From NCBI GenBank assembly GCA_965112735.1, contig OZ218952.1, positions 1,302,001 to 1,366,000 of the forward strand: a DNA stretch of 64,000 nucleotides. The letters run 5' to 3'. This document shows positions 480 through 56,352 of this stretch, piece by piece. The translations under genes were made by a program, and so were the position numbers. Source of the DNA: Phaeosaccion multiseriatum (Eukaryota; Protista; Ochrophyta, other classes). A model generated the notes under the pieces. It was not told the DNA's origin and ran no database searches. It saw only the letters and a program-made list of their open reading frames with translations. Within the stretch, counting starts at the first letter, position 1; each line of letters opens with the position of its first letter.

Positions 480-3234
480 ATGATGCGCGTACTGGTCCAG
501 AAGAAGATATACCAGTACTCTCCGCCGGCCGAGAGGAGGGGGGAGGAACTTGTTTGCTATCCCTCCCCTCCCCCTCACGATCTCACATCACAGCGGATCT
601 CGAGGGAGAGGGGAATACAAACCGGGAAATGGACAACCAATTGGGAGAATACCTCGCTGATTGTGGAGACGGGAAGTCGAAAGCAGATGGAAGAGAAAGT
701 GCTCCAGCAGCTTTCCACCAACAATGATAACGAAGGTACGCCTACCCAACAGCGGAGTGATGGCAAGAGCAAGGATTCGGAGGGTCACAGCGCAGTTGAT
801 GTGAGAATGGGCAAGGAAAACAAGGGAGAGACAATCTTCAAAGTCCTTGCTCCCATGGAAGAGGGCGGAGGTGGACGATACATCAAGCTTGGTCGACTGG
901 ATGAGACCGGCACCTTTGCTCTCAACGCGGCTCTTGGTGGCGGTGCTGATGCTTATGAGACTGCTTCTGATGGTAGCGGCGAGGATACTGTCAGGGAGAC
1001 GAGCGAGGCCCTCTCGGGAGCCTCAACTGTGGAAGCGGTGATGGAGCGGCTCGGCATGACTGAAGAACTGAAGCTGACTGCAGTGGCAGACGACGACATC
1101 GCTGCTGCCCAGGGTCGGACGGCCGTGAAAGGAGGCATGACAGTGTATGCAAAGACGGACCCCTGCCTACTGCCCAAGAAGGTGACCAAGGACGAGGGGG
1201 GGGACGAGAATGATGACGGTGAAGAGCTTTTTGTGCGTCCGGTGATGAGCATACTGCAAAAGCAGGAGTTTCAGGTCAACATCCTGTTCAAGGGGGAGAG
1301 TCACACGATCAAGACCGATTGCAGGAGCGTGCCGGCCTTAGCCCGTGAAATTGCAAACCTCACCGGCGTGCCTCCTAAGAAGCAGGAGCTGTCGTTCATT
1401 CACTACCCCAGAGAGGAAGAGAAAGAGGGCGAGGTGAGAGCGGAGGCGGACAAGGAAGGAGAATGGCAGTCAACTCCCTCCCTCCCTCAGTCACTCACTC
1501 CCTGCATCCCTCTCTCCTCTCACTCCCTCCCCCCCTCCCTCCTTCCGTGCTACCCATCGTCTATCCCTCCCTCCCTCCCTCCCTCCCTCCCTGCCTCCCT
1601 GCCTCCCCGCCTCCCTGCCCCCCCCCCCTCCCTCCTTCCCTCCCTCTCGCCCTCCCTCCATTCCCACCTACCCACCTCCCTCCCTCCCTTCCTTCCTTCC
1701 TCCCTCCCTCCCTCCCTCCCTCCCTCCCTCCCTCCCTCCCTCCCTCCCTCCCTCCCTCCCTCCCTCCCTCCCTCCCTCCCTCCCTCCCTCCCTCCCTCCC
1801 TCCCTCCCTCCCTCCCTCCCTCCCTCCCTGCCTCCCTGCCTCCCCGCCTCCCTGCCCCCCCCCCCTCCCTCCTTCCCTCCCTCTCTCCCTCCCTCCATTC
1901 CCACCTACCCACCTCCCTCCCTCCCTTCCTTCCTTCCTCCCTCCCTCCCTCCCTCTCTCCCTCCCTCCCTCCCTCCCTCCCTCCCTCCCTCCCTCCCTCC
2001 CCCTCCCTCCCTCCCTCCCTCCCTCCCTCCCTCCCTCCCTCCCTCCCTCCCTCCCTCCCTCCCTCCCTCCCTCCCTCCCTCCCTCCCTCCCTCCCTCCCT
2101 CCCTCCCTCCCTCCCTCCCTCCCTCCCTCCCTCCCTCCCTCCCTCCCTCCCTCCCTCCCTCCCTCCCTCCCTCCCTCCCTCCCTCCCTCCCTCCCTCCCT
2201 CCCTCCCTCCCTCCCTCCCTCCCTCCCTCCCTCCCTCCCTCCCTCCCTCCCTCCCTCCCTCCCTCCCTCCCTCCCTTCCTTCCTTCCTTCCTCACCAGAT
2301 GACTGTTCTGCGCCGGGTAGATAGCCATGACAAGCTTTGTCAGCTCGTGACCCACTGCCCAGGCGATACGGTCCCTACACTCGTACTTCGGGAAGCGGAC
2401 GACACAAAGGGTCGCATTTTAGGATTTCTCATGGAAGTCTTTGTGATGACTATGGCTGGAAAGACCATCTCCGTGTGGGTGGAGCCTTTCGCTACCGTCG
2501 CAGCTTTCAAGAAGGAGATTTATGATTTGGAGGGCATCGCTCCTCATCAACACAGGCTGATCTTTGCGGGGCGTCAGCTGGAGGACAACTGCACGCTGTC
2601 CGAGTACAACGTAACGAAAGAAACCACGGTGCACCTGGTGTTGCGGCTACGTGGAGGCATGTACGTGCCCGCTACGGGGGGTGCACGGATCCCCCGCGGG
2701 TTCACTGCGTGCCATGTGGAAGCCCCTCGCTCTGCTGGCGGCCGCGAGGGCGACGACGTGCTCCTCCCTGTGACGGCATCCACCACGCTCCAGAACCTCT
2801 GCAAAGACGTTCTCCTGCCTGCTGTCCAGGACGCCATTCTTCGGGGACCGCAGCCTGGGTCCAGCCCTGCCGAGGCTGCTCTCGATGCACACCGTGGGGA
2901 AGGGGGCGTGGGAGGTGCGGCTCAGGAGGAGGACGTGGAGAAGAAGAAGGCCGGCAGTGACGCTCCTCCTGCCCCTTCCCCGGCCGCGGAAGCGATGCTG
3001 CAGGAGCTGCTGGCGGGCATGGTGTGGGAATGGCAGACCGACCCGGCCAAGACGCCGGAGCAGCTGCTGGAGAGCAGAGGGCTGGAGGCATCAGAAGGTT
3101 ACTTGGCGCTGCTCAGGGACGCGAGGGCTCGGATCGAAGGTGAGGAGCAAGCCGCTACAGGCTCTTGGTGGGGGGTGGGGTTGGACACTATATACACTTT
3201 TTGTGTTTGGGGAGGGCTTCAGAGACAAGACTGA
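480..3234 (+). CDS. Internal-ubiquitin-domain protein, tandem copy 1 (exons 480-1433, 2299-3234; about 629 aa)
   Basis: Phase-0 intron GAG|GTGAGA...CTCACCAG|ATG at 1434-2298. UBL at 2431-2658 ([12 protein letters not shown]...HLVLRLRGG). The spliced junction aligns with the contiguous sequence of the intronless paralogues at 49790 and 54264. The shared stop is replaced here (GGTGAG instead of GGTGCGTAG). Confidence 0.85.
1530..2290. repeat. (CCCT)n tract in the intron of copy 1, with an internal ~130 bp duplication
   Basis: Directly visible. The compound block at about 1570-1700 recurs at about 1810-1940. Confidence 0.95.
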
Positions 3235-4295
3235 GTCCTTAGTTGATCGGTCGGTTCGTCGTGTGTCGCTCGGATTCTTGAGCCGAACCGCGTTGACACG
3301 CTTCACATCCGTGCCATCAGCCAGCCCCCTGTCCTGCTGCTCGTTTATTTCTCACTTGCTCGCTCTATCGCTCCTCGCTCGCCCTTGCCCTTGTGTTTGT
3401 TTCGGCTGCTTCGCGTCAATGCGGCGTGTGGCAGCAGGGAAAGCCCGCAATGGCCAGCAGGAGCGGGGCGAGAGAACACGCGGACGAGGAGGAGGAAGAG
3501 GGGGAGGACGAGGTGGAGAAGGAGGAGAGCGCGGAAGGTCGTGGCGGCGACGACAAAGCCGCAGGGCCAGACAGACTGCAGCGCGTAGAGAAGCCTGAGC
3601 GGCTCACACCATCGGTGGGCAGCTGCCGGCGGGCGAAGGCGGACGGGGCAGCCAGGGAGCGGCCGAGGAGGTAGGAGGTTAGCACCATCTCTACCACACG
3701 CCCTTGGAAGGGCGCGCATTTGTCTGGACACCATTGGTTGAAGTTGCTAGGCTCGAGGGTTGTGCATGTAAAAGTAGATACTGTAGAATGTGGGGAGAAG
3801 GGGGGGGGGGAGGGAGGGCGAGCAAGCTGAACGAACATGTCAGATCCTTGCTTCGAGCGAGATGGCTCACAAGGGGTTTTTAGAACATGCACTACCCGGG
3901 GAGAGACCCGACCGTAGGACAAGGCCACAAGGCCAGCCAGCAGGAGGAATGTGGTGTGAGGAACCATCCCTCCCAGACTGATCGCTCCACCTTCCGTCAC
4001 CTGTGAGCACGAGAAGCATCTGTAGGCAGGGGGGGTGCTCTTTGAGGGACGAGGCGGGGAAGAGGAAGGAAGGGTCACTGAGCCGCTCATGGCTCAGAAG
4101 GTAATAATCGAGGAGGAGGAAAAGGGTGCCACATCATACCTGAAATTTAAATTCATGGTGGGAAAACTGAAACTGCGCTTGGTGACTGCACTGCGCAGGG
4201 GCAGGAAACGTCCTTCTCTCCCTCCTCAAGCAAGGGAACGCCAGAAGAAATAAACGGAGGGGAGTGGTAGCACGCAAGGGGTCTCCAGTCCAAAG

Positions 4296-6216
4296 ATGAT
4301 GCGCGTACTGGTCCAGAAGGAGACATACCAGTACTCTCCGCCGACCCCCCGTAGTGGGGATGAACTTGTTTGCCACCCTTCCCCCCCCCGCTTTCGTCAG
4401 AGACTCAAGCCAAATGGGGAATGGACAGTCGAGTCGGAGAGTATCTCGCTGATTGTGGAGACGGGAAGTCGAAAGCAGATGGAAGAGAAAGTGCTCCAGC
4501 AGCTTTCCAGCAGCTGCAGCAACAAGAACAAGGGTACGCCTATCCAAAAGCAGAGTGATGGAAAGAGCAAGGATTCGGAAGGTCACAGCGTAGTCGATGT
4601 GAGAATGGGCAAGGAAAACAAGGGAGAGACAATCCTCAAAGTCCATACTCCCATGGAAGAGGGCGGAGGTGGACGATACATCAAGCTTGGTCGACTGGAT
4701 GAGACCGGCACCTTTGCTCTCAACGCGGCTCTTGGTGGCGATGATACCGTCAGGGGGAGGAGCGAGGCCCTATCGGGAGCCTCAACTGTGGAAGCGGTGA
4801 TGGAGCGGCTCGGCATGATTGAAAAACTGAAGCTGACTGCAGTGGCAGACGACGACATCGCTGCCGCCCAGGAGGGGACGGTCGTGAGAGGAGGCATGAC
4901 AGTATATGCGAAGACGGACCACTGCTTACTGCCCAAGGTGACCAAGGACGAGGGGGGCGAGAATGATAACGGCGAAGAGCTTTTTGTGCGTCCGGTGATG
5001 GGCATAATGCAAATGCAGGAGTTTAAGGTTAATGTCCTCTTCAAGGAGGAGAGCCACACGATCAAGACGAATTGCAGGAACTTGTCGGCCTTTGCCTGTG
5101 AGATTGCAAACCTCACCGGCGTGCCTAGGAGGAGCCAGGAGCTGTCTTTCATTCACTGCCGCAGAGAGGAAGGGGAAGAGGGCGAGGTGAGAGCGGAGGC
5201 GGACAAGGAAGGGGAATCGCAATCAACTCCCTCCCTCCCTCCCTCCTTCCGTCCTACCCTCCCTCCCTCCCTCTCTCCCTGTATCCCTCCCTGACCCCCT
5301 CCCTGCCTCCTTCCTTGCCTCCCTCCCTCCCTCCCTCCCTCACCAGATGACTGTTCTGAACTCGGCTAGCTATGACGAGTTTTGTGAACTCGTGATCAAC
5401 TGCCCAGCCGATACGGTCCCTACACTCGTACTTCAGGACAAGGGCGATTTGAAGGTTCAGGACAAGGGCGATTTGAAGAATCGGTACTACGGCCGTGGTA
5501 TGCAAGTCTTTGTGAAGAATCTAACTGGAAAGACCATCACCGTGGATGTGGAGCCATCCACTACCGTCGCAGCTCTCAAGAAGAACATTAAGGCCCACGA
5601 AGGCATCGCTCCTGATCAGCAGAGGCTGATCTTTGCGGGGCGTCAGCTGGAGGACTGGCGCACGCTGTTCGAGTGCGGGATATCGGCGGAAGTAACGATT
5701 CACCTGGTGTTGCGGCTACGTGGAGGCATGTACGTGCCCGCTACGGGGGGTGCACGGATCCCCCGCGGGTTCACCGCGTGCCATGTGGAGGCCCCTCGCT
5801 CTGCTGGCGGCCGCGAGGGCGACGACGTGCTCCTCCCTGTGACGGCGTCCACCACGCTCCAGAACCTCTGCAAAGACATTCTCCTGCCTGCTGTCCAGGA
5901 CGCCATTCTTCGGGGGCCGCAGCCTGGGTCCAGCCCTGCCGAGGCTGCTCTCGATGCACACCGTGGGGAAGGGGGCGTGGGAGGTGCGGCTGAGGAGGAG
6001 GACGTGGAGGAGAAGAAGGCCGGCAGTGACGCTCCTCCTGCCCCTTCCCCGGCCGCGGAAGCGATGCTGCAGGAGCTGCTGGCGGGCATGGTGTGGGAAT
6101 GGCAGACCGACCCGGCCAAGACGCCGGAGCAGCTGCTGGAGAGCAGAGGGCTGGAGGCATCAGAAGGTTACTTGGCGCTGCTCAGGGACGCGAGGGCTCG
6201 GATCGAAGGTGCGTAG
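4296..6216 (+). CDS. Internal-ubiquitin-domain protein, tandem copy 2 (exons 4296-5186, 5347-6216; about 586 aa)
   Basis: Same phase-0 GT-AG intron (160 bp). UBL at 5500-5727, [12 protein letters not shown]...HLVLRLRGG. Confidence 0.88.
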
Positions 6217-7390
6217 CAAGCCGCTACAGGCTCTTGGTGGGGGGTGGGGTTGGACACTCAATACACTTTTTGTGTTTGGGAGGGCTTCAGAGACAAGACT
6301 GAGTCTACACATTTCTCCCTCAGTTGATCGGTTGGTTCGACCTGGCTGTGTCGATCGGATTCTTGAGCTGAACCGCGTTGACACGCTTCACATCCGTGCC
6401 ATCAGCCAGCCCCCTGTCCTGCTGCTCGCTTATTTCTCACTTGCTCGCTCTGTCGCTCCTCGCTCGCCCTTGCCCTCGTGTTTGTTTCGGCTGCTTCGCG
6501 TCAATGCGGCGTGTGGCAGCAGGGAAAGCCCGCAATGGCCAGCAGGAACGGGGCGAGAGAACACGCGGGCGCGGAGGAGGAAGAGGGGGAGGACGAGGTG
6601 GAGGAGGAGAGCGCGGAAGGTCGTGGCGGCGACGACAAAGCCGCAGGGCCAGACAGACTGCAGCGCGTAGAGAAGCCTGAGTGACCATCGGTGGGCAGCT
6701 GCCAGCGGGCGAAGGCGGCCGGGGCAGCCAGGGAGCGGCCGAGGAGGTAGGAGGTCAGCACCATCTCTACCACACGCCCTTGGAAGGGCGCGCATTTGTC
6801 TGGACACCATTGTTGAAGCTGCTAGGCTCGAAGGTTATTTTAATGTAAAAGTAGATATTGTAGAATATGGGGAGAAGGGGGGGGAGGGAGGGCGAGCAAC
6901 AAGCTGAACGAACATGTCAGATCTTTGCTTCGAGCGAGATGGCTCACAAGGGGTTTTTAGAGCATGCACTACCCGGGGAGAGACCAGACCGTAGGACAAG
7001 GCCACAAGGCCAGCCAGCAGGAGGAATGTGGTGTGAGGAACTATCCCTCCCAGACTGATCGCTCCACCTTCCATCATCAGTGAGCACGAGAAGCATCTGT
7101 AGGCAGGGGGGGTGCTCTTCGAGGGACGAGGCGGGGAAGAGGAAGGAAGGGTCACTGAGGAACCGCTCATGGCTCAGAAGGTAGTGGTAGGGAGGAGGAG
7201 AGGAGGAAAAGGGCGCCACATCATGCCACCTTGATATTTAAATTCATGGTGGGAAAACTGAAACTGCGTTTGATGACTGCACTGCGGAGGGGCAGGGAAT
7301 GTCCTTCTCTCCCTCCTTCCTCAATCAAGGGAACGCCCGAAGAAATAAACGGAGGGGAGTGGTAGCACGCAAGGGGTCTCCAGTCCAAAG

Positions 7391-9889
7391 ATGATGCGCA
7401 TACTGGTCCACAAGGAGACATACCAGTACTCTCCGGGCTGGACAGTCGAGTCGGAGAGTATCTCGCTGATTGTGGAGACGGGAAGTCGAAAGCAGATGGA
7501 ACAGAACGTGCTCCAGCAGCTTTCCAGCAGCTGCAGCAACAAGAACAAGGGTACGCCAATCCAAAAGCAGAGTGATGGAAAGAGCAAGGATTCGGAAGGT
7601 CACAGCGTAGTCGATGTGAGAATGGGCAAGGAAAACAAGGGAGAGACAATCCTCAAAGTCCATACTCCCATGGAAGAGGGCGGAGGTGGACGATACATCA
7701 AGCTTGGTCGACTGGATGAGACCGGCACCTTTGCTCTCAACGCGGCTCTTGGTGGCGATGATACCGTCAGGGGGAGGAGCGAGGCCCTCTCTGGAGCCTC
7801 AACTGTGGAAGCGGTGATGAAGCGGCTCGGTAGGTCTCAAGAACTGAAGCTGAGTGCAGTGGCAGACGACGACATCGCTGCCGCCCAGGAGGGGACGGTC
7901 GTGAGAGGAGGCATGACAGTATATGCGAAGACGTGGTGGCGCAAGGTGACCAAGGACGAGGGGGGCGAGAATGATGACGGCGAAGAGCTTTTTGTGCGTC
8001 CGGTGATGGGCATAGTGCAAATGCAGGAGTACAAGGTTAATGTCCTCTTCAAGGAGGAGAGCCACACCATCAAGACAGATTGCAGGAACTTGTCGGCCTT
8101 TGCCCGTGAAATCGCAAACCTCACCGGCGTGCCTAGGAGGAGGCAGGAGCTGTCGTTCATTCACTACCCCAGAGAGGAAGGGAAAGAGGGCGAGGTGAGA
8201 GTGGGGGCGGACAAGGAAGGGGAATCGCAGTCAACTCCCTACCACCCTTAGTCACTCACTCACTGCATCCCTCTCTCCTCCCTCCCTCCCTCTTTCCGTC
8301 CTACCCTCAGTCCCTCCCTTCCTCCCTCCCTGCCTCCCTTCGTCCCTCCCTCCCTCCTTCCGTCCTACCCTCCCTCCCTCCTTCCGTCCTACCCTCCCTC
8401 CCTCCTTCCCTCCGTCCCTCCCTCCCTCCGTCCCTCCGTCCCTCCCTCCCTCCCTCCCTCCCTCCCTCCCTCCCTCCCTCCCTCCCTCCCTCCCTCCCTC
8501 CCTCCCTCCCTCCCTCCCTCCCTCCCTCCCTCCCTCCCTCCCTCCCTCCCTCCCTCCCTCCCTCCCTCCCTCCCTCCCTCCCTCCCTCCCTCCCTCCCTC
8601 CCTCCCTCCCTCCCTCCCTCCCTCCCTCCCTCCCTCCCTCCCTCCCTCCCTCCCTCCCTCCCTCCCTCCCTCCCTCCCTCCCTCCGTCCCTCCGTCCCTC
8701 CGTCCCTCCCTCCCTCCCTCCCTCCCTCCCTCCCTCCCTCCCTCCCTCCCTCCCTCCCTCCCTCCCTCCCTCCCTCCCTCCCTCCCTCCCTCCCTCCCTC
8801 CCTCCCTCCCTCCCTCCCTCCCTCCCTCCCTCCCTCCCTCCCTCCCTCCCTCCCTCCCTCCCTCCCTCCCTCCCTCCCTCCCTCCCTCCCTCCCTCCCTC
8901 CCTCCCTCCCTCCCTCCCTCCCTCCCTCCCTCCCTCCCTCCCTCCCTCCCTCCCTCCCTCCCTCCCTCCCTCCCTCCCTGCCTCCCTCCTCCCTCCCTCC
9001 CTCCCTCCCTCCCTCCCTCCCTTCCTCCCTCCCTCACCAGATGACTGTTCTGAACTTGGATAGCTATGACGAGTTTTGTGAACTCGTGACCAACTGCCCA
9101 ACCGATACGGTCCCTACACTCGTACTTCAGGACAAGGGTGATCTGAAGAATCGGTACTTTGGCCGTAGTATGCAAGTCTTTGTGAAGACTCTAACTGGAA
9201 AGACCATCTCCGTGTGGGTGGAGCCTTCCACTACCGTCGACGGTTTGAAGAAGGAGATTGAGGCCAGCGAAGGCATCCCTCCTGATCAGCAGAGGCTGAT
9301 CTATGCGGGGTGTCATGACTTGGAGGACTGGCGCACGCTGTCCGACTACAGGATACCGATGGAAGGGACGATTCACCTGGTGTTGCGGCTACGTGGAGGC
9401 ATGTACGTGCCCGCTACGGGGGGGGCACGGGTCCCCCCCGGGTACACTGCGTGCTACGTGGAGGCCCCTCGCTCTGCTGGCGGCCGCGAAGGCGATGACG
9501 TGCTCTTCACAGTGACGGCATCCACCACGCTCCAGAACCTCTGCAAAGACGTTCTCCTGCCTGCTGTGCAGGACGCCATTCTTCGGGGGGCGCAGCCTGG
9601 GTCCAGCCCTGCCGAGGCTGCTCTCGATGCACACCGTGGGGAAGGGGGCGTGGGAGGTGCGGCTCAGGAGGAGGACGTGGAGGAGAAGAAGGCCGGCAGT
9701 GACGCTCCTCCTGCCCCTTCCCCGGCCGCGGAAGCGATGCTGCAGGAGCTGCTGGCGGGCATGGTGTGGGAATGGCAGACCGACCCGGCCAAGACGCCGG
9801 AGCAGCTGCTGGAGAGCAGAGGGCTCGAGGCCTCAGAAGATTACTTGGCGCTGCTCAGGGACGCGAGGGCTCGGATCGAAGGTGCGTAG
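7391..9889 (+). CDS. Internal-ubiquitin-domain protein, tandem copy 3 (exons 7391-8194, 9041-9889; about 550 aa)
   Basis: Same intron (846 bp). UBL at 9170-9400 with a 1-aa insertion (AGCHDLED), ending LRLRGG. Confidence 0.88.
8270..9032. repeat. (CCCT)n tract in the intron of copy 3
   Basis: Directly visible. Confidence 0.95.
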
Positions 9890-10867
9890 CAAGCCGCTAC
9901 AGGCTCTTGGTGGGGGGTGGGGTCGGACACTATATACACTTTTTGTGTTTGGGAGGGCTTCAGAGACAAGACTGAGTCTACACATTTCTCCCTCAGTTGA
10001 TCGGTTGGTTCGACCTGGCTGTGTCGATCGGACTCTTGGGCCGAACCGCGTTGGCACGCTTCACATCCGTGCCATCAGCCAGCCCCCTGTCCTGCTGCTC
10101 GCTTATTTCTCACTTGCTCGCTCTGTCGCTCCTCGCTCGCCCTTGCCCTCGTGTTTGTTTCGGCTGCTTCGCGTCAATGCGGCGTGTGGCAGCAGGGAAA
10201 GCCCGCAATGGCCAACAGGAGCGGGGCGAGAGAACACGCGGACGAGGAGGAGGAAGAGGGGGAGGACGAGGTGGAGAAGGAGGAGAGCGCGGAAGGTCGT
10301 GGCGGCGACGACAAAGCCGCAGGGTCAGACAGGCTGCAGCGCGTAGAGAAGGCTGAGCGGCTCACACCATGGGTGGGCAGCTGCCGGCGGGCGAAATCGG
10401 CCGGGGCAGCCAGGGAGCGGCCGAGGAGGTAGGAAGTTAGGACCATCTCTACCACACGCCCTTGGAAGGGCGCGCATTTGTCTGGACACCATTGTTGAAG
10501 CTGCTAGGCTCGAGGGTTGTGCATGTAAAAGTAGATACTGTAGAATATGGGGAGAAGGGGGGGGAGGGAGGGCGAGGAAAAGCTGAACGAACCTGCAAGA
10601 TCTTCGCTTCGAGCGAGATGGCTCACAAGGGGTTTAGAGAATATGCACTACCCGAGGAGAGAACAGACCGTAGGACAAGGCCACGAGGCCAGCCAATAGG
10701 AGGAATGTGATGTGAGGAACCATCCCTCCCAGACTGATCGCTCCACCTTCAGTCATCTGTGAGCACGAGATGCATCTGTAGGCAGGGGGGGTGCTCTTTG
10801 AGGGACGAGGCGGGGAAGAGGAAGAAAGGGTCACTGAGGAACCGCTCATGGCTCAGAAGGTAGTGGT

Positions 10868-11335
10868 TGGGGGGGGGAATAAATATATTGACTTAATAGG
10901 AATCACCTTATAAACTGAAACTGGAAGTGTGCGCGAGTGTTTGTGTGTATGTGTTTATGTGTGCGGGGGGGGGGGTTGTTACTCCCCCTCTGGGTCAGGG
11001 AGAGGGAAGGCAGGACCTGCTCCGCGGTTGAGCCGGCCCAGGAAGGCGCGTTCACGCTCCGAGAGCCACATCTGGTGACTGCAGCTAACGATCCGGCGGA
11101 GTCGGGTCAGGACGTGGCCCTTGATGGTAGAGGAGCCGGTGCGGCCGGTGCGAGAGACGACGTGTTCGGCGAGGGCGTGTAGGCACTAAGAGGGACTGCG
11201 CCTGTGAGCCGAGTCGTCCGTGCGTCTCGATGGCGAAGGTCGTGAGGCGAACTCGCTCTGGGTCGTAGGTGTTGGCGTAGTGCCGCTCCTTGCAGGTCTC
11301 GCGGTGGGCTGCTGCCGCGCCCGGTCTGGTGTCTG
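10868..11335 (-). mobile_element. 5'-truncated CRE/R2-group non-LTR retrotransposon remnant (end of the restriction-like endonuclease domain)
   Basis: Manual minus-strand translation of about 11322-10979: GAAAAHRETCKERHYANTYDPERVRLTTFAIETHGRLGSQAQSLL, frameshift, HALAEHVV...LTRLRRIVSCSHQ. This matches the REL motif (E-x-x-K-x-x-x-Y...FAxETxGRxG). The segment is absent from the other spacers of the array. Confidence 0.7.
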
Positions 11336-11533
11336 GTGTCCAGAGGGAGAAAAAAAAAAAAGGACGTTATCGAAACTGCCACTTCAACTACAATGTAGAT
11401 TCGTGCTTTTTTTGTAACTGCCTGCGCTGGCGAGAAAAACTCTCCTTCTCTCCCTCCTTCCTCAAGAGCAAGAGAACGCCCGAAGAAATAAACAGAGGGG
11501 AGTGGTAGCACGCAAGAGGTCTCCAGTCCAAAG

Positions 11534-14034
11534 ATGATGCGCATACTGGTCCAGAAGGAGACATACCAGTACTCTCCGCCCACCCCCCGGAGTGGGGATG
11601 AACTTGTTTGGTGTCCTCCCCCCCCCCCCTTTCGTCAGAGACTCAAGCCAAATGGGGAATGGGAAGCGTCGGGTCATTGGACAGCCAAGTCGGAGAGTAT
11701 CTCGCTGATTGTGGAGACGGGAAGTCGAAAGCAGATGGAAGAGAACGTGCTCCAGCAGCTTTCCAGCAGCTGCAGCAACAAGAACAAGGATACGCCTATC
11801 CAAGAGCAGAGTGATGGAAAGAGCAAGGATTCGGAAGATCACAGCGCAACTGATGTGAGAATGGGCAAGGAAAACAAGGGAGAGACAATCCTCAAAGTTC
11901 GTACTCCCATGGAAGAGGGCGGTGGAGGTGGACGATACATCAAGCTTGGTCGACTGGATGAGACCGGCACCTTTGCTCTCAACGCGGCTCTTGGTGGCGA
12001 TGATACCGTCAGGGAGAGGAGCGAGGCCCTATCGGGAGCCTCAACTGTGGAAGCGGTGATGGAGCGGCTCGGTATGACTGAAGAACTAAAGCTGACAGCA
12101 GACATCTCTGGCAATGTCGGCGACAGGTTTACGTCTGTCCTCAGGAGCGAGGCCATGACAGTATATGCGAAGACGGACCTCTGCCTACTGCCCAAGGTGA
12201 CCAAGGACGAGGGGGGCGAGAATGATGACGGCGAAGAGCTTTTTGTGCGTCCAGTGATGGGCATAGTGCAAATGCAGGAGTATAAGGTTAATGTCCTCTT
12301 CAAGGAGGAGAGCCACACCATCAAGACGGATTGCAGGAACTTGTCGTCCTTTGCCCGTGAAATTGCAAACCTCACCGGCGTGCCTAGGAGGAGGCAGGAG
12401 CTGTCGTTCATTCACTACCCCAGAGAGGAAGGGAAAGAGGGCGAGGTGAGAGCGGAGGCGGACAAGGAAGGAGAATCGCAGTCAACTCCCTCCCTCCCTC
12501 CCTCCCTCCCTCCCTCCCTCCCTCCCTCCCTCCCTCCCTCCCTCCCTCCCTCCCTCCCTCCCTCCCTCCCTCCCTCCCTCCCTCCCTCCCTCCCTCCCTC
12601 CCTCCCTCCCTCCCTCCCTCCCTCCCTCCCTCCCTCCCTCCCTCCCTCCCTCCCTCCCTCCCTCCCTCCCTCCCTCCCTCCCTCCCTCCCTCCCTCCCTC
12701 CCTCCCTCCCTCCCTCCCTCCCTCCCTCCCTCCCTCCCTCCCTCCCTCCCTCCCTCCCTCCCTCCCTCCCTCCCTCCTCCCTGCCTCCCTCCCTCCCTCC
12801 ATCCATCCATGCATCCATCCATCCATCCATCCATCCATCCATGCATCCATCCATCCATCCATCCATCCATCCATCCATCCATCCATCCATCCATCCATCC
12901 ATCCATCCATCCATCCATCCATCCATCCATCCATCCATCCCTCCCTCCCTCCCTCCATCCATCCATCCATCCATCCATCCATCCATCCATCCATCCATCC
13001 ATCCATCCATCCATCCATCCATCCATCCATCCATCCATCCATCCATCCATCCATCCATCCATCCATCCATCCCTCCCTCCTTCCCTCCATCTCTCCCTCC
13101 CCCCTTCCCTCCCTCTCTCCCTTTATCCCTCCCTGACCCCCTCCCTGCCTCCTTCCTTGCCTCCCTCCCTTCCTCCCTCCCTCACCAGATGACTGTTCTG
13201 AACTCGGATAGCTATGACGAGTTTTGTGAACTTGTGATCAACTGCCCAGCCGATACGGTCCCTACACTCGTACTTCAGGACAAAGGTGATCTGAAGAATC
13301 GGTTCTTTGGCCGTAGCATGCAAGTCTTTGTGAGGCATCTAACCGGAAAGACCATCTCCGTGTGGGTGGACCCTTCCACTACCGTCGACGGTTTGAAGAA
13401 GGAGATTCGGGATTTGGACGGCATCCCTCCTGATGAACAGAGGCTGATCTATGCGGGGTGTCAGCTGGAGGACTGGCGCACGCTGTCCGAGTACAGGATA
13501 GCGGCGGAAGGAACGATTCACCTGGTGTTGCGGCTACGTGGAGGCATGTACGTGCCCGCTACGGGGGGTGCACGGATCCCCCGCGGGTACACTGCGTGCT
13601 GTGTGGAAGCCCCTCGCTCTGCTGGCGGCCGCGAGGGCGACGACGTGCTCCTGCCCGTGAAGGGGTCAATCAGTCTCCAGAGCCTCTGCAGAGACGTTCT
13701 CCTGCCTGCTGTCCAGGACGCCATTCTTCGGGGGCCGCAGCCTGGGTCCAGCCCTGCCGAGGCTGCTCTCGATGCACACCGTGGGGAAGGGGGCGTGGGA
13801 GGTGCGGCTCAGGAGGAGGACGTGGAGGAGAAGAAGGCCGGCAGTGACGCTCCTCCTGCCCCTTCCCCGGCCGCGGAAGCGATGCTGCAGGAGCTGCTGG
13901 CGGGCATGGTGTGGGAATGGCAGACCGACCCGGCCAAGACGCCGGAGCAGCTGCTGGAGAGCAGAGGGCTGGAGGCCTCAGAAGGTTACTTGGCGCTGCT
14001 CAGGGACACGAGGGCTCGGATCGAAGGTGCGTAG
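11534..14034 (+). CDS. Internal-ubiquitin-domain protein, tandem copy 4 (exons 11534-12445, 13189-14034; about 585 aa)
   Basis: Same intron (743 bp). UBL at 13318-13545, ending LRLRGG. Confidence 0.88.
12487..13180. repeat. Compound (CCCT)n/(CCAT)n tract in the intron of copy 4
   Basis: CCCT to about 12798, CCAT at about 12799-13070, then degenerate CCCT. Confidence 0.95.
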
Positions 14035-15051
14035 CAAGCCGCTACAGGCTCTTGGTGGGGGGTGGGGTCGGACACTATATACACTTTTTGTGTTTGGGAG
14101 GGCTTCAGAGACAAGACTGAGTCTACACATTTCTCCCTCAGTTGATCGGTTGGTTCGACCTGGCTGTGTCGATCGGACTCTTGGGCCGAACCAAGTTGGC
14201 ACGCTTCACATCCGTGCCATCAGCCAGCTCCCTGTCCTGCTGCTCGCTTATTTCTCATTTGCTCGCTCTGTCGCTCCTCGCTCGCCCTTGCCCTCGTGTT
14301 TATTTCGGCTGCTTCGCGTCAATGCGGCGTGTGGCAGCAGGGAAAGCCCGCAATGGCCAGCAGGAGCGGGGCGAGAGAGCACGTGGACGAGGAGGAGGAA
14401 GAGGGGGAGGACGAGGTGGAGAAGGAGGAGAGCGCGGAAGGTCGTGGCGGCGACGACAAAGCCGCAGGGCCAGACAGGCCGCAGCGCGTAGAGAAGCCTG
14501 AGCCACACCATCGGTGGGCAGCTGCCGGCGGGCGAGGCGGCCGGGGCAGCCAGGGAGCGGCCGAGGAGGTAGGAGGTTAGCACCATCTCTACCACACACC
14601 CTTGGAAGGGCGCGCATTTGTCTGGACACCAGATCCTGTGTTGTACCAACATGCATTTTGGTTTTTCGGCCACCTTTGTTGAAGTTGCTAGGCTCGAGGG
14701 TTGTGCATATAAAAGTAGATACTGTAGAATATGGGGAGAAGGGGGGGAGGGAGGGCGAGCAACAAGCTGAACGAACATGTAAGATCCTTGCTTCGAGCGA
14801 GATGGCTCACAAGGGGTTTAGAGAATATGCACTACCCGAGGAGAGACCAGCTCGTAGGACAAGGCCACAAGGCCAGCCAATAGGAGGAATGTGATATGAG
14901 GAACCATCTCTCCCAGACTGATCGCTCCACCTTCCATCATCAGTGAACACGAGATGCATCTGTAGGCAGGGGGGGTGCTCTTTGAGGGACGAGGCGGGGA
15001 AGAGGAAGGAAGGGTCACTGAGGAACCGCTCATGGCTCAGAAGGTAGTGGT

Positions 15052-15547
15052 TCGGCCCCATGCACGCCTAGCGGTTTTGCTCTAGGCCGCTAGGCCGCTA
15101 GGCCGCTCGGCCTTCGGCCGATCTAGGCCTAGGCCGGCGGCCTCCGGCCGCTCTAGGCCGCTCACTTTTCAGTCCTAGGCGGCCTATATAGCCCGCCTCT
15201 AGGCAGCCTCCCAGTGACCGTGGGCGCGTGCGTGGTGCCGCCCAGCCAGTGGGTAGCAGCACACCTGTAGGTCTGCACTCCTCGTAGGGCCAGCGAGGCG
15301 GAAGAGACAACACGAACCAAGTCTACTCCTCACTTCCAATCCCATGCAATGAAACTGACTACTCTTTGCACTCTGGGCACTCCCACCGTCCCCCTAGTTG
15401 GCTGGCGTCTGCCCTAGGCCGCGCGGGCCTCCGGCCCGCCTAGGCCGCCTAGGCGGTGGCATATAAATAGGCCGAGGGCCTACGGCCCTCGCTAGGCGGG
15501 GCAATTTTCCCAAATAGGCCTAGGCCGCTAGGCGTGCATGGGGCCGA
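15052..15547. mobile_element. Non-autonomous DNA transposon (MITE), 496 bp, 23-bp TIRs, 7-bp TSD
   Basis: Perfect TIR TCGGCCCCATGCACGCCTAGCGG at both ends. TSD TAGTGGT at 15045-15051 and 15548-15554. The empty site AAGGTAGTGGTAGGG is present in the paralogous spacers at about 7180 and 18990. Subterminal CCTAGG/GGCCGCTAGG motifs are present. Confidence 0.93.
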
Positions 15548-15755
15548 TAGTGGTAGGGAGGAGGAGAGGAGGAAAAGGGCGCCACATCATGCCACCTTAA
15601 ATTTAAATTCATGGTGGGAAAACTGAAACTGCGTTTGGTGACTGCACTGCGGAGGGGCGGGGAATGTCCTTCTCTCCCTCCTTCCTCAAGCAAGGGAACG
15701 CCCGAAGAAATAAACGGAGGGGAGTGGTAGCACGCAAGGGGTCTCCAGTCCAAAG

Positions 15756-18032
15756 ATGGTGCGCATACTGGTCCAGAAGGAGACATACCAGTACTCTCCG
15801 CCGACCCCCCGGAGTGGGGATGAACTTGTTTGCTGTCCTTCCCCCCCCTCCTTTCGTCAGAGACTCAAGCCAAATGGGGAATGGGAAGCGTCGGGTCATT
15901 GGACAGCCAAGTCGGAGAGTATCTCGCTGATTGTGGAGACGGGAAGTCGAAAGCAGATGGAAGAGAAAGTGCTCCAGCAGCTTTCCAGCAGCTGCAGCAA
16001 CAAGAACAAGGATATCCAAAAGCACGGTGATGGAAAGAGCAAGGACTCGGAAGGTCACAGCGCAGTTGATGTGAGAAGGGGGAAGGAAAACAAGGGAGAG
16101 ACAATCCTCAAAGTCCGTACTCCCATGGAAGAGGGCGGTGGAGGTGGACGATACATCAAGCTTGGTCGACTGGATGAGACCGGCACCTTTGCTCTCAACG
16201 CGGCTCTTGGTGGCGATGATACCGTCAGGGGGAGGAGCGAGGCCCTCTCTGGAGCCTCAACTGTGGAAGCGGTGATGAAGCGGCTCGGTAGGACTCAAGA
16301 ACTGAAGCTGAGTGCAGTGGCAGACGACGACATCGCTGCCGCCCAGGAGGGGACGGTCGTGAGAGGAGGCATGACAGTATATGCGAAGACGTGGTGGCCC
16401 AAGGTGACCAAGGACGAGGGGGGCGAGAATGATGACGGCGAAGAGCTTTTTGTGCGTCCGGTGATGGGCATAATGCAAATGCAGGAGTATAAGGTTAATG
16501 TCCTCTTCAAGGAGGAGAGCCACACCATCAAGACAGATTGCAGGAACTTGTCGGCCTTTGCCCGTGAAATTGCAAACCTCACCGGCGTGCCTAGGAGGAG
16601 GCAGGAGCTGTCGTTCATTCACTACCCCAGAGAGGAAGGGAAAGAGGGCGAGGTGAGAGTGGGGGCGGACAAGGAAGGGGAATCGCAGTCAACTCCCTAC
16701 CACCCTTAGTCACTCACTCACTGCATCCCTCTCTCCTCCCTCCCTCCCTCTTTCCGTCCTACCCTCAGTCCCTCCCTTCCTCCCTCCCTGCCTCCCTTCG
16801 TCCCTCCCTCCCTCCTTCCGTCCTACCCTCCCTCCCTCCTTCCCTCCGTCCCTCCCTCCCTCCCTCCCTCCCTCCCTCCCTCCCTCCCTCCCTCCCTCCC
16901 TCCCTCCCTCCCTCCCTCCCTCCCTCCCTCCCTCCCTCCCTCCCTCCCTCCCTCCCTCCCTCCCTCCCTCCCTCCCTCCCTCCCTCCCTCCCTCCCTCCC
17001 TCCCTCCCTCCCTCCCTCCCTCCCTCCCTCCCTCCCTCCCTCCCTCTCTCCCTCCCTCCCTCCCTCCCTCCCTCCCTCCTTCCCTCCCTCTCTCCCTCCC
17101 TCCCTCCTTCCCTGACTCCCTCCCTGCCTCCCTCCCTGCCTCCCTCCCTCCCTCCCTCCCTCCCTCCCTCCCTTCCTCACCAGATGACTGTTCTGAACTT
17201 GGATAGCTATGACGAGTTTTGTGAACTCGTGACCAACTGCCCAGCCGATACGGTCCCTACACTCCTACTTCAGGACAAGGGTGATCTGAAGAATCGGTAC
17301 TTTGGCCGTAGTATGCAAGTCTTTGTGAAGACTATAACTGGAAAGACCATCTCCGTGTGGGTGGAGCCTTCCACTACCGTCGCAGCTTTCAAGAAGGAGA
17401 TTGAGGCCAGCGTAGGCATGCCTCCTGATCAGCAGAGGCTGATCTATGCGGGGTGTCATGACTTGGAGGACTGGCGCACGCTGTCCGACTACAGGATACC
17501 GATGGGAGGAACGATTCACCTGGTGTTGTGGCTACGTGGAGGCATGTACGTGCCCGCTACGGGGGGTGCACGGATCCCCCCCGGGTACACTGCGTGCTGT
17601 GTGGAAGCCCCTCGCTCTGCTGGCGGCCGCGAGGGCGACGACGTGCTCCTGCCCGTGAAGGGGTCAATCAGTCTCCAGAACCTCTGCAAAGACGTTCTCC
17701 TGCCTGCTGTCCAGGACGCCATTCTTCGGGGGCCGCAGCCTGGGTCCAGCCCTGCCGAGGCTGCTCTCGATGCACACCGTGGGGAAGGGGGCGTGGGAGG
17801 TGCGGCTGAGGAGGAGGACGTGGAGGAGAAGAAGGCCGGCAGTGACGCTCCTCCTGCCCCTTCACCGGCCGCGGAAGCGATGCTGCAGGAGCTGCTGGCG
17901 GGCATGGTGTGGGAATGGCAGACCGACCCGGCCAAGACGCCGGAGCAGCTGCTGGAGAGCAGAGGGCTGGAGGCCTCAGAAGGTTACTTGGCGCTGCTCA
18001 GGGACGCGAGGGCTCGGATCGAAGGTGCGTAG
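15756..18032 (+). CDS. Internal-ubiquitin-domain protein, tandem copy 5 (exons 15756-16652, 17184-18032; about 581 aa)
   Basis: Same intron (531 bp). UBL at 17313-17543, ending LWLRGG. Confidence 0.88.
16735..17176. repeat. (CCCT)n tract in the intron of copy 5
   Basis: Directly visible. Confidence 0.95.
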
Positions 18033-19199
18033 CAAGCCGCTACAGGCTATTGGTGGGGGGTGGGGTTGGACACTATATACACTTTTTGTGTTTGGGGAGG
18101 GCTTCAGAGACAAGACTGAGTCCGTAGTGTTTTGATCGGTCGGTTCGACTTGGCTGTGTCGATCGGATTCTTGAGCCGAACCGCGTTGACACGCTTCACA
18201 TCCGTGCCATCAGCCAGCCCCCTGTCCTGCTGCTCGTTTATTTCTCACTTGCTCGCTCTGTCGCTCCTCGCTCGCCCTTGCCCTCGTGTTTGTTTCGGCT
18301 GCTTCGCGTCAATGCGGCGTGTGGCAGCAGGGAAAGCCCGCAATGGCCAGCAGGAACGGGGCGAGAGAACACGCGGACGAGGAGGAGGAAGAGGGGGAGG
18401 ACGAGGTGGAGAAGGAGGAGAGCGCGGAAGGTCGTGGCGGCGACGACAAAGCCGCAGGGCCAGACAGGCCGCAGCGCGTAGAGAAGCCTGAGTGACCATC
18501 GGTGGGCAGCTGCCGGCGGGCGAAGGCGGCCGGGGCCGCCAGGGAGCGGCCGAGGAGGTAGGAGGTCAGCACCATCTCTACCACACGCCCTTGGAAGGGC
18601 GCGCATTTGTCTGGACACCATTGTTGAAGTTGCTAGGCTCGAAGGTTGTGCATGTAAAAGTAGATACTGTAGAATATGGGGAGAAGGGGGGGGAGGGAGG
18701 GCGAGCAACAAGCTGAACGAACATGTAAGATCCTTGCTTCGAGCGAGATGGCTCACAAGGGGTTTAGAGAATATGCACTACCCGAGGAGAGAGCAGACCG
18801 TAGGACAAGGCCACGAGGCCAGCCAATAGGAGGAATGTGATATGAGGAACCATCTCTCCCAGACTGATCGCTCCACCTTCCATCATCAGTGAACACGAGA
18901 TGCATCTGTAGGCAGGGGGGGTGCTCTTTGAGGGACGAGGCGGGGAAGAGGAAGGAAGGGTCACTGAGGAACCGCTCATGGCTCAGAAGGTAGTGGTAGG
19001 GAGGAGGAGAGGAGGAAAAGGGTGCCACATCATGCCACCTTAAATTTAAATTCATGGTGGGAAAACTGAAACTGCGTTTGGTGACTGCACTGCGGAGGGG
19101 GCGGGGAATGTCCTCCTCTCCCTCCTTCCTCAAGCAAGGGAACGCCCGAAGAAATAAACGGAGGGGAGTGGTAGCACTCAAGGGGTCTCCAGTCCAAAG

Positions 19200-21220
19200 A
19201 TGATGCGCATACTGGTCCAGAAGGAGACATACCAGTACTCTCCGCCGACCCCCCCCGTTTGCTATCCTTCCCCCCCCCGCTTTCGTCGGAGACTCAAGCC
19301 AAATGGGGAATGGAAAGCGTCGGGTCATTGGACAGTCGAGTCGGAGAGTATCTCGCTGATTGTGGAGACGGGAAGTCGAAAGCAGATGGAAGAGAAAGTG
19401 CTCCAGCAGCTTTCCAGCAGCTGCAGCAACAAGAACAAGGATACGCCTATCCAAAAGCAGAGTGATGGAAAGAGCAAGGATTCGGAAGGTCACAGCGCAG
19501 TTGATGTGAGAATGGGCAAGGAAAACAAGGGAGAGACAATCCTCAAAGTTCGTACTCCCATGGAAGAGGGCGGTGGAGGTGGACGATACAGATACATCAA
19601 GCTTGGTCGACTGGATGAGACCGGCACCTTTGCTCTCAACGCGGCTCTTGGTGGCGATGATACTGCTGCTGATGATGGAACAGACGATACCGTGAGCGTT
19701 TCGAACCAGATTGCTGATGCTTATGAGACTGCTTCTGATGGTAGCGGCGAGGATACTGTGGCCCTCTCGGGAGCCTCAACTGTGGAAGCGGTGATGGAGC
19801 GGCTCGGTATGACTGAAGAACTGAAGCTGACTGCAGTGGCAGACGACGACATCGCTGCCGCCCAGGAGGGGACGGTCGTGAGAGGAGGCATGACAGTATA
19901 TGCGAAGACGGACCCCTGGCTACTGCCCAAGGTGACCAAGGACGATGGGGGCGAGAATTATGACGGCGAAGAGCTTTTTGTGCGTCCGGTGATGGGCATA
20001 ATGCAAATGCAGGAGTTTAAGGTTAATGTCCTCTTCAAAGAGGAGAGCCACACCATCAAGACAGATTGCAGGAACTTGTCGGCCTTTGCCCGTGAAATTG
20101 CAAACCTCACCAGCGTGCCTAGGAGGAGGCAGGAGCTGTCGTTCATTCACTACCGCAGAGAGGAAGGGAAAGAGGGCGAGGTGAGAGCGGAGACGGACAA
20201 GGAAGGAGAATCGCAATCAACTCCCTACCACCCTTAGTCACTCACTCACTGCATCCCTCTCTCCTCCCTCCCTCCCTCTTTCCGTCCTACCCTCAGTCCC
20301 TCCCTCCCTCCCTCCCTCCCTGACCCCCTCCCTCCCTGCCTCGCTCCCTCCGTCCTTCCTTCCTCCCTCACCAGATGACTGTTCTGAACTCGGATAGCTA
20401 TGACGAGTTTTGTGAACTTGTGATCAACTGCCCAGCCGATACGGTCCCTACACTCGTACTTCAGGACAAGGGTGATCTGACGTGTCGGTACTTTGGCCGT
20501 AGCATGCAAGTCTTTGTGAAGACTATAGCTGGAAAGATCATCTCCGTGTGGGTGGAGCCTTCCACTACCGTCGCAGCTTTCAAGAAGGAGATTTATGATT
20601 TGGAGGGCATCGCTCCTGATCAGCAGAGGCTGATCTATGCGGGGCGTCAGCTGGAGGACTGGCGCACGCTGTCCGACTACAGGATAGCGGCGGATGACAC
20701 AATGCACTTGATCCTCCCGCTACGTGGAGGCATGTACAAGCCCGCTACGGGGGGTGCACGGATCCCCCCCGGGTACACTGCGTGCTACGTGGAGGCCCCT
20801 CGCTCTGCTGGCGGCCGCGAGGGCGACGACGTGCTCCTGCCCGTGAAGGGGTCAATGAGTCTCCAGAGCCTCTGCAGAGACATTCTCCTGCCCGCGGTCC
20901 AGCAGTCTATTCGGCGTGGGCCGCAGTCTGAGGCCGGTCCTGCTAGGGCGGCTCTCGACGCAAGCAGCGTGGAAGAGAAGATGGAGGGGAAGGACAGTGA
21001 TGAGGCTCTGGAGGGGAAGGACAGTGATGAGGCTCCTCCTGCCCCTTCCCCGGCCGCGGAAGCGATGCTGCAGGAGCTGCTGTCGAGCATGGTGCAGGAA
21101 GGGCAGCGCGGCCCGGCCAAGACGCCGGAGCAGCTGCTGGAGAGCAGAGGGCTGGAGGCTTCGGATCAGAACTTGATGCTGCTCAGGGACGTGATGGCAC
21201 AGGAGGATCCAGGCGCATAG
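19200..21220 (+). CDS. Internal-ubiquitin-domain protein, tandem copy 6 (exons 19200-20180, 20375-21220; about 608 aa)
   Basis: Same intron (194 bp). UBL at 20504-20731, ending LPLRGG. Its C-terminal module is of the type found in the 54264 paralogue. Confidence 0.88.
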
Positions 21221-39421: not shown

Positions 39422-39462
<41 letters not shown>

Positions 39463-39797
39463 GGAGGACGAGGCTCATCAACAGCAACAGCAGCAGCAAC
39501 CACAACAGGAAGAACAGCAGCAGCAGACGCAGGGCGAAGACTGGTGGGTGGGGTCTTCGAGCGGCGCTCTCGAAGGCGACGGTACGAATGGGCACCATCC
39601 CAACCCACCACCTACTGCTGCGGCCCATCCGCATCAGCCGCAGGAATCGCCTGCTCAGGTTCAAGTGGAAGGGGGTGAGGTAATGGAGATAATGGGGGGG
39701 GGGGAGGATAGTCGTGGCGTCTGGAGTGGGCACTTTGGATCCGAGAAACAACAACAACAGCAACAACAGCAACAACAACAACAACAGCAACAACAGC

Positions 39798-39867
<70 letters not shown>

Positions 39868-40361: not shown

Positions 40362-40402
<41 letters not shown>

Positions 40403-44329: not shown

Positions 44330-44365
<36 letters not shown>

Positions 44366-56201: not shown

Positions 56202-56321
56202 ATGGTCAAGAGTACCGTAGCCAGAGGAGGGAGAACGGCGGTCAAAGGGGGGGGTGGAGGGAGAGGAGGTACAGCAGGCCGAGGAGGGAGAGGAGGAGGA
56301 GGAGGAGGAGGAGGAGGACGA

Positions 56322-56352
<31 letters not shown>

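Follow-up and report, generated by a model that had tools for sequence, protein, structure and literature searches.

Six tandem genes with an internal, diversified ubiquitin domain in Phaeosaccion multiseriatum: candidate precursors for deubiquitinase cleavage

Ubiquitin is the textbook extreme of protein conservation and is among the most conserved proteins known. What are we to make, then, of a locus in the photosynthetic protist Phaeosaccion multiseriatum where six tandem genes each carry a different ubiquitin within a longer protein? To answer this we analysed a window of 64,000 nucleotides, the whole stretch of DNA considered here, starting from a reading of the sequence alone that had proposed a new ubiquitin-variant system.

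The array, its coding status and its paralogs

The six two-exon genes (U1 to U6) lie head-to-tail on the forward strand at 480-21220, with an ATG at each of the starts that the sequence-only reading had proposed (480, 4296, 7391, 11534, 15756 and 19200). U1 (480..3234) consists of exon 1 at 480-1433, a (CCCT)n intron at 1434-2298 and exon 2 at 2299-3234; its usual stop has mutated from TAG to GAG, extending the frame by 31 codons. In U2 (4296..6216) the intron at 5187-5346 separates exons at 4296-5186 and 5347-6216, and in U3 (7391..9889) the intron at 8195-9040 separates exons at 7391-8194 and 9041-9889. U4 (11534..14034) has exons at 11534-12445 and 13189-14034 around an intron at 12446-13188, U5 (15756..18032) has exons at 15756-16652 and 17184-18032 around an intron at 16653-17183, and U6 (19200..21220) has exons at 19200-20180 and 20375-21220 around an intron at 20181-20374. 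Exon 1 encodes 268-327 aa. Exon 2 encodes a linker of 44-51 aa, then a ubiquitin-like domain (UBL) of 76-77 aa that ends in LRGG, then a C-terminal tail of about 163 aa, giving predicted proteins of about 550-630 aa. The intron is in phase 0, 160-865 nt long, 73-93% pyrimidine and mostly CCCT repeats, and its GT-AG splice sites (donor GAG/GTGAGAG, acceptor CTCACCAG/ATG) are conserved in all six copies. The gene model has a predicted 3' end, where a possible donor (AAG/GTGCGT) overlaps the stop codon. The spacer insertions in units 3 and 4 were considered as a shared transposon, an idea rejected because the one in unit 3 occurs nowhere else in the window and lacks terminal repeats.

The six copies are about 10% apart in DNA, and every one of their exons is open, with no internal stop across about 10.6 kb of U1-U6 coding sequence. 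Among the six copies every exon indel (18/18) is a multiple of three, compared to 7/30 in the spacers, and divisibility by three does not extend to every intron. The join between exon 1 and exon 2 is backed by two intronless paralogs (P7 at 49790-51427 and P8 at 54264-55910) that read straight through it. These features mark U1-U6 as real protein-coding genes, and their frame-preserving evolution suggests that they are expressed.

Three further relatives had been claimed at 46.7-55.9 kb. They are present on the opposite strand, one intact and two frame-shifted. P7 (49790..51427, reverse strand) is intact and intronless and encodes 545 aa. Over exon 1 it shares 38-41% identity with the U copies; its UBL, which ends TIGAG, lacks the GG site, and its tail shows conversion to the U1-U5 type. 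P8 (54206..55910, reverse strand) is also intronless, with a tail that is frame-shifted near 54337-54393 and starts identically to that of U6; its UBL ends LRLRTCCG, again with no GG site. P9 (46695..47907, reverse strand) is degenerate and pseudogene-like, with matching pieces in three different reading frames. Since the older paralogs P7 and P8 lack the GG, the ancestral or general function of the family need not involve cleavage.

The ubiquitin domain and the regions around it

The internal domain of U1-U6 is ubiquitin-derived, with 47-53 of its 76 residues the same as in human ubiquitin (62-70%). The count is 47/76 in U1 (2431..2658), 51/76 in U2 (5500..5727, where the domain ends LRLRGG and M follows), 53/76 in U3 (9170..9400, with a one-residue insertion after G47), 49/76 in U4 (13318..13545), and 48/76 in both U5 (17313..17543, R72 replaced by W) and U6 (20504..20731, R72 replaced by P), all on the forward strand. 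Pfam family PF00240 matches the array UBLs with E values of 1e-20 to 4e-27. Against its curated cut-off of 25.4 bits, U1, U2, U6, P7 and P8 score 62-94 and the P9 fragment 43.5. Among solved structures the best matches are ubiquitin itself, and VIA-align places the model on ubiquitin with a Z of 16.

As first noticed, all six UBLs differ from each other: 41 of the 76 positions are variable. The other 35 are frozen among the six copies, and 31 positions are both invariant and the same as in ubiquitin, including R42, L43, I44, G47, H68, L69, L71 and L73-G76. The features that never vary are the fold core, R42, I44, H68 and the string L73-R-G-G-M, a Met standing directly after the GG in 6/6 copies. 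Lysines have been lost at positions 29, 33 and 48 in all six copies and at position 63 in five of them.

The N-terminal region is predicted to be beta-rich, and the tail is predicted to begin with a short beta/alpha element, continue as acidic disorder and end in three helices; AlphaFold confidence is low over most of both (mean pLDDT 51 and 59, respectively). Structure models suggest that P7 residues 174-240 form a second, degenerate ubiquitin-like fold. Here the model stretch 174-379 aligns on linear di-ubiquitin, the pLDDT of the fold being 60-75, and hhalign gives a P of 1e-4 alongside a below-threshold Pfam match to Ubiquitin_2. The start of the tail and the first N-terminal module might be degenerate ubiquitin repeats (hhalign E of 0.1-0.14, in a plausible register), which we treat as a lead only.

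Searches for relatives of these regions were negative. In a full-length word-index search the ubiquitin domain alone was matched, with hits covering at most 32% of the query, and sequence-database searches with the N-terminal region and, separately, the tail found no relatives. An exhaustive HMMER search of 1.84 billion proteins with the N-terminal profile gave 0 hits, and PDB sequence profiles gave no match to the non-ubiquitin parts. Scanning viral and metagenome contigs with N-terminal and tail profiles yielded no confirmed relatives. For the non-ubiquitin parts, Pfam at E up to 10 returned hits at chance level only, none of them in the tail, and a fold search with the tail returned nothing at E ≤ 1. 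Part-search scores from the ESM Atlas (up to 0.86, leaning to ubiquitin families) were judged uninformative, as they probably reflect context from the neighbouring ubiquitin domain. The orphan status of the N-terminal region and tail is provisional, the searched protein collection being one without this genome's own proteins. As judged from sequence, the family appears to be lineage-specific.

Selection and gene conversion

The suspicion that variation is concentrated in the UBL was borne out when dN/dS was calculated by domain: the ratio (omega) is 1.53-1.77 in the UBL compared to 0.44-0.80 elsewhere, with equal dS. The value of 1.53 has a bootstrap confidence interval of 1.01-2.62, its lower bound barely above 1, and was obtained by Nei-Gojobori counting, a method that may overestimate omega where transition and GC bias are present. 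UBL omega exceeded that of the rest of the protein in 2000/2000 bootstrap draws and was above 1 in each of the 15 copy pairs. For U1-U5 only, it rises to 1.77, with a pS of 0.093 in the UBL versus 0.126 in exon 1. Because synonymous divergence in the UBL is not above that of exon 1, the UBL excess is non-synonymous only. Import of a foreign ubiquitin, or exemption from conversion, was rejected as the cause of UBL divergence on the same ground (UBL synonymous divergence 0.09-0.11). Outside the UBL, dN/dS of 0.66-0.80 corresponds to weak constraint overall. Diversifying selection would act on the exposed surface of the UBL and spare its fold core, the recognition patch centred on I44 and the LRGG-M junction. 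Such a combination suggests that conserved ubiquitin machinery recognises the domain, which at the same time escapes a fast-changing partner or becomes tuned to it.

The module after the UBL was said to barely differ among copies 1-5, and its DNA is indeed 97-100% identical there. This constancy is no evidence for a constrained payload: the near-identity is not specific to the tail and runs about 1 kb into the non-coding 3' flank, and the constancy of the tail in U1-U5 is due to concerted evolution by gene conversion that the flank shares. A conversion tract of about 570 nt (5755..6336, forward strand, in copy-2 coordinates) extends from the PPGFTACY codons to about 105-120 nt beyond the stop. 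Within it U1-U5 are 89-100% identical to the inverted paralog P7, compared to about 50% in the remaining P7 DNA. Gene conversion holds tail and 3' flank uniform, even between inverted paralogs 30-45 kb apart. The U6 tail is of a second type, common to P8. Of the informative site pairs, 54% fail the four-gamete test, and compatibility is higher between neighbouring sites than after permutation (P ≤ 0.0015), supporting mosaic recombination among the array copies. The birth-and-death family first proposed is supported, as a tandemly amplified and recombining one. Two opposite forces appear to meet in one gene, diversifying selection on one domain and homogenisation by conversion of the next, and a ubiquitin-derived surface outpaces silent sites in a recently amplified array whose recognition patch and putative processing site are frozen.

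Possible roles and known ubiquitin systems

We favour, at what we consider an even chance, a reading in which U1-U6 encode a multi-beta-grasp precursor that would be cut by deubiquitinases after LRGG, its ubiquitin surface under diversifying selection, in a lineage-specific recombining family. Cellular deubiquitinases would cut after Gly76, as at polyubiquitin, UBA52/RPS27A, ISG15-precursor and SDE2 junctions; this step is predicted only from conservation of the motif, and its products would be the tail and a ubiquitin variant with an N-terminal extension. If the proteins are expressed and cleaved, they are ubiquitin-fusion precursors of a new type, show by natural experiment which parts of the ubiquitin surface can change while recognition is kept, and may offer a way into host-virus conflict in marine algae. 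It is also conceivable, if unlikely, that the array is a natural library of ubiquitin variants, acting as decoys that dock through I44 and LRGG, as competitive inhibitors or as cleavage-triggered sensors against pathogen enzymes (for example deubiquitinases or ligases of algal giant viruses), with the cut freeing the uniform tail as a signal or effector. Such a library would make ubiquitin itself the basis of a new innate-immune logic, and engineered UbV inhibitors would have a counterpart in nature.

Alternatively, the protein may stay intact and act as an adaptor, its UBLs docking on ubiquitin receptors or the proteasome and the LRGG being an inherited remnant of its ubiquitin origin. The GG-less ends of P7 (itself intact) and P8 fit this, as do the invariance of the I44 patch, which ubiquitin receptors use, and what appear to be at least two beta-grasp folds in series. 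We nevertheless consider it somewhat unlikely, since 6/6 copies keep L73-R74-G75-G76 and the Met after it despite 41/76 variable positions and an omega above 1, a constancy that would be difficult to account for if the junction were not under selection; moreover, Pfam found no UBA or other receptor-type domain.

A modifier resembling ISG15 or FAT10 would have its tail removed and its two-UBL N-terminal part activated through the exposed GG, for attachment as a chain-terminating tag. R72 of ubiquitin is a determinant of E1 recognition, and its replacement in U5 and U6, both of which keep LRGG, suggests that cutting and not activation is selected for. Known modifiers offer no precedent for a cargo of some 350 aa before the UBL or for a propeptide of 163 aa, and no dedicated E1 or E2 gene was seen in the window. 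Set against this are the two apparent UBL folds in series, the second ending LRLRGG as in ISG15, the lysine losses described above and an ISG15-like fast evolution, and we regard the modifier as quite unlikely.

We find it improbable that the array is functionless or decaying, that is, recently amplified and drifting neutrally, so that relaxed constraint would give the UBL its omega near 1 and conversion would explain the remainder. Such decay would accommodate the frame-shifts in two of the three older paralogs, the high dN/dS outside the UBL, the lost stop codon of U1, the lack of relatives in the databases searched and the empty result of a run search restricted to RNA libraries. Against it stand the frame-preserving exon indels, the open coding sequence and the conserved splice sites, and a UBL split into 35 frozen and 41 variable positions is unlike uniform relaxation. 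An assembly artefact (collapsed or expanded haplotypes, or chimeric long reads) is scarcely credible even for a repetitive array with long microsatellite introns across which short-read unitigs break up, given that two haplotypes could not supply six different UBL variants and units of 3.1-4.2 kb, that copy-specific segments occur with zero mismatches in unitigs of four runs and that the short reads carry paralog-type variant letters at many positions. Compared with the window, those four sequencing runs behave as DNA, with contigs of up to 221 kb, spacers covered and no joints; their unitigs match the copy-2 UBL exactly (5415-5631, 0 mismatches), though the runs may share the sample of the assembly.

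The view that this architecture fits neither canonical ubiquitin genes nor RAD23/DSK2 proteins stands, Pfam finding no ribosomal or UBA domain. Like the ubiquitin precursors (polyubiquitin, UBA52/eL40 and RPS27A/eS31), the U genes have a ubiquitin fold ending RLRGG fused in frame to a further polypeptide, although LRGG and Met are kept in U1-U6 and R72 is lost in U5 and U6; cleavage is predicted. As at polyubiquitin junctions, Met follows G76 and deubiquitinase processing is expected. Those precursors start with ubiquitin, whereas here it is internal, behind about 310-360 aa, and is diverged, copy-variable and depleted of lysines; unlike in UBA52 and RPS27A, the tail is not a ribosomal protein. 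RAD23, DSK2 and DDI1 differ in having an N-terminal UBL and one or more C-terminal UBA domains. In cytopathic pestivirus (BVDV) polyproteins, a captured internal host ubiquitin serves as a host-deubiquitinase cleavage site between unrelated parts. That arrangement arises by viral RNA recombination with unmodified host ubiquitin, whereas the U genes are a spliced nuclear family with diversified ubiquitin and no viral relatives found.

ISG15, FAT10 and OASL evolve fast, as the family does, and have two serial beta-grasp domains, an arrangement that is probable here, and the ISG15 precursor likewise carries an extension, removable in its case, after a last domain ending LRLRGG. They lack the large extra N-terminal region, and the first UBL of the U family is barely recognisable (the hhalign P of 1e-4 above); the 163-aa extension compares with a few residues in ISG15, and sequence kinship is limited to the ubiquitin fold. 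In SDE2, USP enzymes cut a GG-ending ubiquitin-like domain and free the C-terminal product (PMC13572447, PMC5131917). This is a precedent for the UBL-directed cleavage proposed here, although SDE2 is a single-copy gene with a conserved N-terminal UBL and a GGKGG junction, whereas the U genes have LRGG-MY and no SDE2 domain in Pfam. Finally, diverged poly-UBL proteins of 300-950 aa from many eukaryotes (annotated 'ubiquitin C' or 'polyubiquitin-like') resemble the family in joining non-identical ubiquitin-like units in one chain. They match the U ubiquitin domain only, the other U modules being unrecognisable as ubiquitin by sequence, and are a possible evolutionary source of the family.

Gene structure of the tandem array and its relatives

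The window is nuclear DNA of a photosynthetic eukaryote with a GC content of 55–65%. The six head-to-tail units proposed by the sequence-only reading (U1–U6; 3.1–4.2 kb each) are present at 480–21220, each with two long open reading frames on the plus strand. In every unit a phase-0 intron joins both frames, and its donor (GAG/GTGAGAG) and acceptor (CTCACCAG/ATG) are the same in all six. The introns span 160–865 nt, are 73–93% pyrimidine and consist for the most part of CCCT repeats. Four are near-pure (CCCT)n of 0.5–0.9 kb (1434–2298, 8195–9040, 12446–13188 and 16653–17183), with lengths differing greatly between copies. Since the introns vary in length without consistently keeping to multiples of three, and reading through copy 3 would meet a stop codon shortly past the donor, a coding repeat is ruled out and the CCCT stretch is an intron. 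In copy 4 the repeat has partly turned into a CATC-rich variant, readable as HPSI repeats, and (CCCT)n is present again at 61.7–62.2 kb. Two spacers carry extra stretches of ~0.5 kb, at 10850–11430 (unit 3) and about 15051–15548 (unit 4); the former has no second copy within the window and no terminal repeats.

All 18 indel events in the exons are multiples of three, compared to 7 of 30 in the spacers, between copies that are ~10% divergent. Together with the intact splice sites and the absence of internal stops from the array exons, this argues for the units being coding genes. The only sequencing runs we found behave as DNA (contigs of up to 221 kb, spacers covered, no joints), and a search for RNA libraries listed none.

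The three further relatives expected at 46.7–55.9 kb were also found, two of them broken. Two intronless paralogs on the minus strand, P7 (49790–51427) and P8 (54264–55910), are open across the exon join and align residue for residue with exon 1 (the N-terminal region) and exon 2 (linker, ubiquitin-derived domain and tail). Matches to the third, P9 (46695–47907), are spread over three reading frames and P8 has a frame-shift inside its tail, so that, of nine family members within 56 kb, seven are apparently intact and two broken.

Substitution in the ubiquitin domain and conversion of the tail

Variation had been claimed to concentrate in the internal ubiquitin-derived domain (UBL), and a domain-wise comparison bears this out. 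Using pooled Nei-Gojobori estimates over U1–U6, with confidence intervals (CI) bootstrapped over codons, dN/dS is 1.53 (CI 1.01–2.62) in the UBL versus 0.66 (0.51–0.87) in exon 1, 0.80 (0.49–1.52) in the linker and 0.73 (0.51–1.09) in the tail; as the method is approximate and transition and GC bias can raise dN/dS, more weight can be put on the difference from the adjoining regions than on the ratio as such exceeding 1. The UBL exceeded the rest of the protein in 2000 of 2000 bootstrap draws and had dN/dS above 1 in 15 of 15 copy pairs; with U1–U5 only, the values are 1.77 in the UBL and 0.44 in the tail. Synonymous divergence in the UBL (0.09–0.11) is not above that in exon 1 (0.12–0.13), so the excess is confined to amino-acid-changing substitutions. 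This opposes both a simple escape of the UBL from homogenisation and the import of foreign ubiquitin as the source of its divergence.

Among the six copies 41 of 76 UBL positions vary: the 6–9 loop, the outer face of strand 2, the helix face 24–34, 36–41, 45, 48–49, 53–54, the 57–65 loop and single positions 2, 18, 20–21, 67, 70 and 72. Another 31, including most core residues, are invariant and the same as in ubiquitin, among them R42, L43, I44, G47, H68, L69, L71 and L73-R74-G75-G76, and a Met follows G76 in every array copy. Of the lysines, K11 and K27 are retained; all six copies have substituted K29, K33 and K48, five have substituted K63 and two K6. In place of R72, U5 has W and U6 has P. 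For ubiquitin such a pattern is unusual, and the observation is real. That the surface diversifies suggests a partner that is itself changing; a pathogen enzyme would be one candidate. The substitution statistics support the flavour of the arms-race reading originally offered, in which the decoy, sensor and modifier mechanisms are putative.

The four-gamete test was failed by 54% of informative site pairs, compatibility between neighbouring sites was higher than under permutation (P ≤ 0.0015) and sites in the UBL alone split the six copies into two groups in eleven different ways. By these site patterns, the array copies are mosaics. The tail (~163 aa after the UBL) is 97–100% identical in U1–U5, as had been noted, and identity remains at 93–100% over most of the next 1 kb of non-coding DNA. 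The inverted P7 is 89–100% identical to the array (pS 0.10) within a tract that starts at the codons for PPGFTACY and ends about 105–120 nt beyond the stop, and about 50% identical (pS 0.63) outside it. The start of the U6 tail is the same as in P8, unlike that of U1–U5. The uniformity of the tail thus results from gene conversion with fixed boundaries. By itself it is no indication of a constrained payload, the part of the earlier claim of a constant C-terminal module that was not supported.

The ~100 nt straight after the stop (6217–6320 and its counterpart in every unit; 49685–49789, minus strand, in P7) are almost invariant among U1–U5 and the distant P7; much of the coding sequence is less conserved than this stretch. 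A good splice-donor consensus, AAG/GTGCGT, overlaps the stop codon itself; in U1, where the stop is lost, it reads AAG/GTGAGG. The conserved stretch could act as a signal in the 3′ UTR; alternatively, one more exon, so far unannotated, could follow.

Domain composition and predicted cleavage

Pfam identifies a single domain, ubiquitin (PF00240, E 1e-17 to 4e-27). The closest solved structures are ubiquitin itself, not NEDD8, SUMO or ISG15, and the copies match human ubiquitin at 47–53 of 76 residues. The AlphaFold model is poor as a whole (mean pLDDT 51), the better-modelled parts being the ubiquitin domain, P7 residues 174–240 (pLDDT 60–75) and three C-terminal helices (pLDDT 74–85). In the model, P7 residues 174–240 form a second beta-grasp directly upstream of the UBL. 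Residues 174–379 superpose on linear di- and tri-ubiquitin (VIA-align, Z 15.6–16.3), and hhalign matches the upstream module to the family's ubiquitin profile in the expected register (P 1e-4). In the first N-terminal module and the tail start, two strands and a helix follow one another as in a beta-grasp, with hhalign giving only E 0.1–0.14, so a poly-UBL origin of the whole protein is a lead rather than a result.

The proposed search for relatives of the non-UBL regions was run. The N-terminal region and tail had no match in a word-index search of 5.8 billion clusters, in PDB sequence profiles or in Pfam, and no confirmed match in viral and metagenome contigs. For the N-terminal region, 1.84 billion representatives were also searched exhaustively with a profile, again with no hit. 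The protein collection searched excludes this genome's own proteins, and close relatives may simply be unsampled.

The locus encodes a family whose internal domain derives from ubiquitin and changes fast, with its recognition patch and LRGG-Met junction both frozen. It is of the same general kind as known ubiquitin-fusion and multi-UBL precursors. Deubiquitinases would be predicted to cut after G76, as at polyubiquitin, ubiquitin-ribosomal, ISG15-precursor and SDE2 junctions, SDE2 being a precedent for a cut at a UBL junction (PMC13572447, PMC5131917). Such a cut would free the tail from a chain-poor ubiquitin variant that carries an N-terminal extension. Two copies have lost R72 and kept LRGG; R72 being a determinant of E1 recognition in ubiquitin, this speaks more for selection on the cut than for activation by E1. 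Loss of GG in the older paralogs, P7 and P8, counts against the cleavage model.

Neighbouring features

An RWP-RK domain gene (PF02042, E 9e-10) with long poly-Q/poly-G low-complexity regions lies on the minus strand at 42682–45326. Fragments matching DUF1823 and Enhancer of rudimentary, at 59087–59710 (minus strand) and 56202–56849 (E 9e-13 and E 6e-4), indicate that ordinary nuclear genes with introns lie downstream of the family. Between P7 and P8, a 436-aa open frame on the minus strand (52288–53598) has no Pfam match; by eye, its Cys/His-containing C-terminus resembles the tail of a non-LTR retrotransposon protein. Very long homopolymeric codon runs occur at 27105–27944 and 38222–41365. 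A purine-rich trinucleotide repeat of ~0.5 kb would give poly-Arg, poly-Gly or poly-Glu according to the frame in which it is read, and another gene has poly-Gln tracts of at least 40 residues within a 1047-aa open frame.
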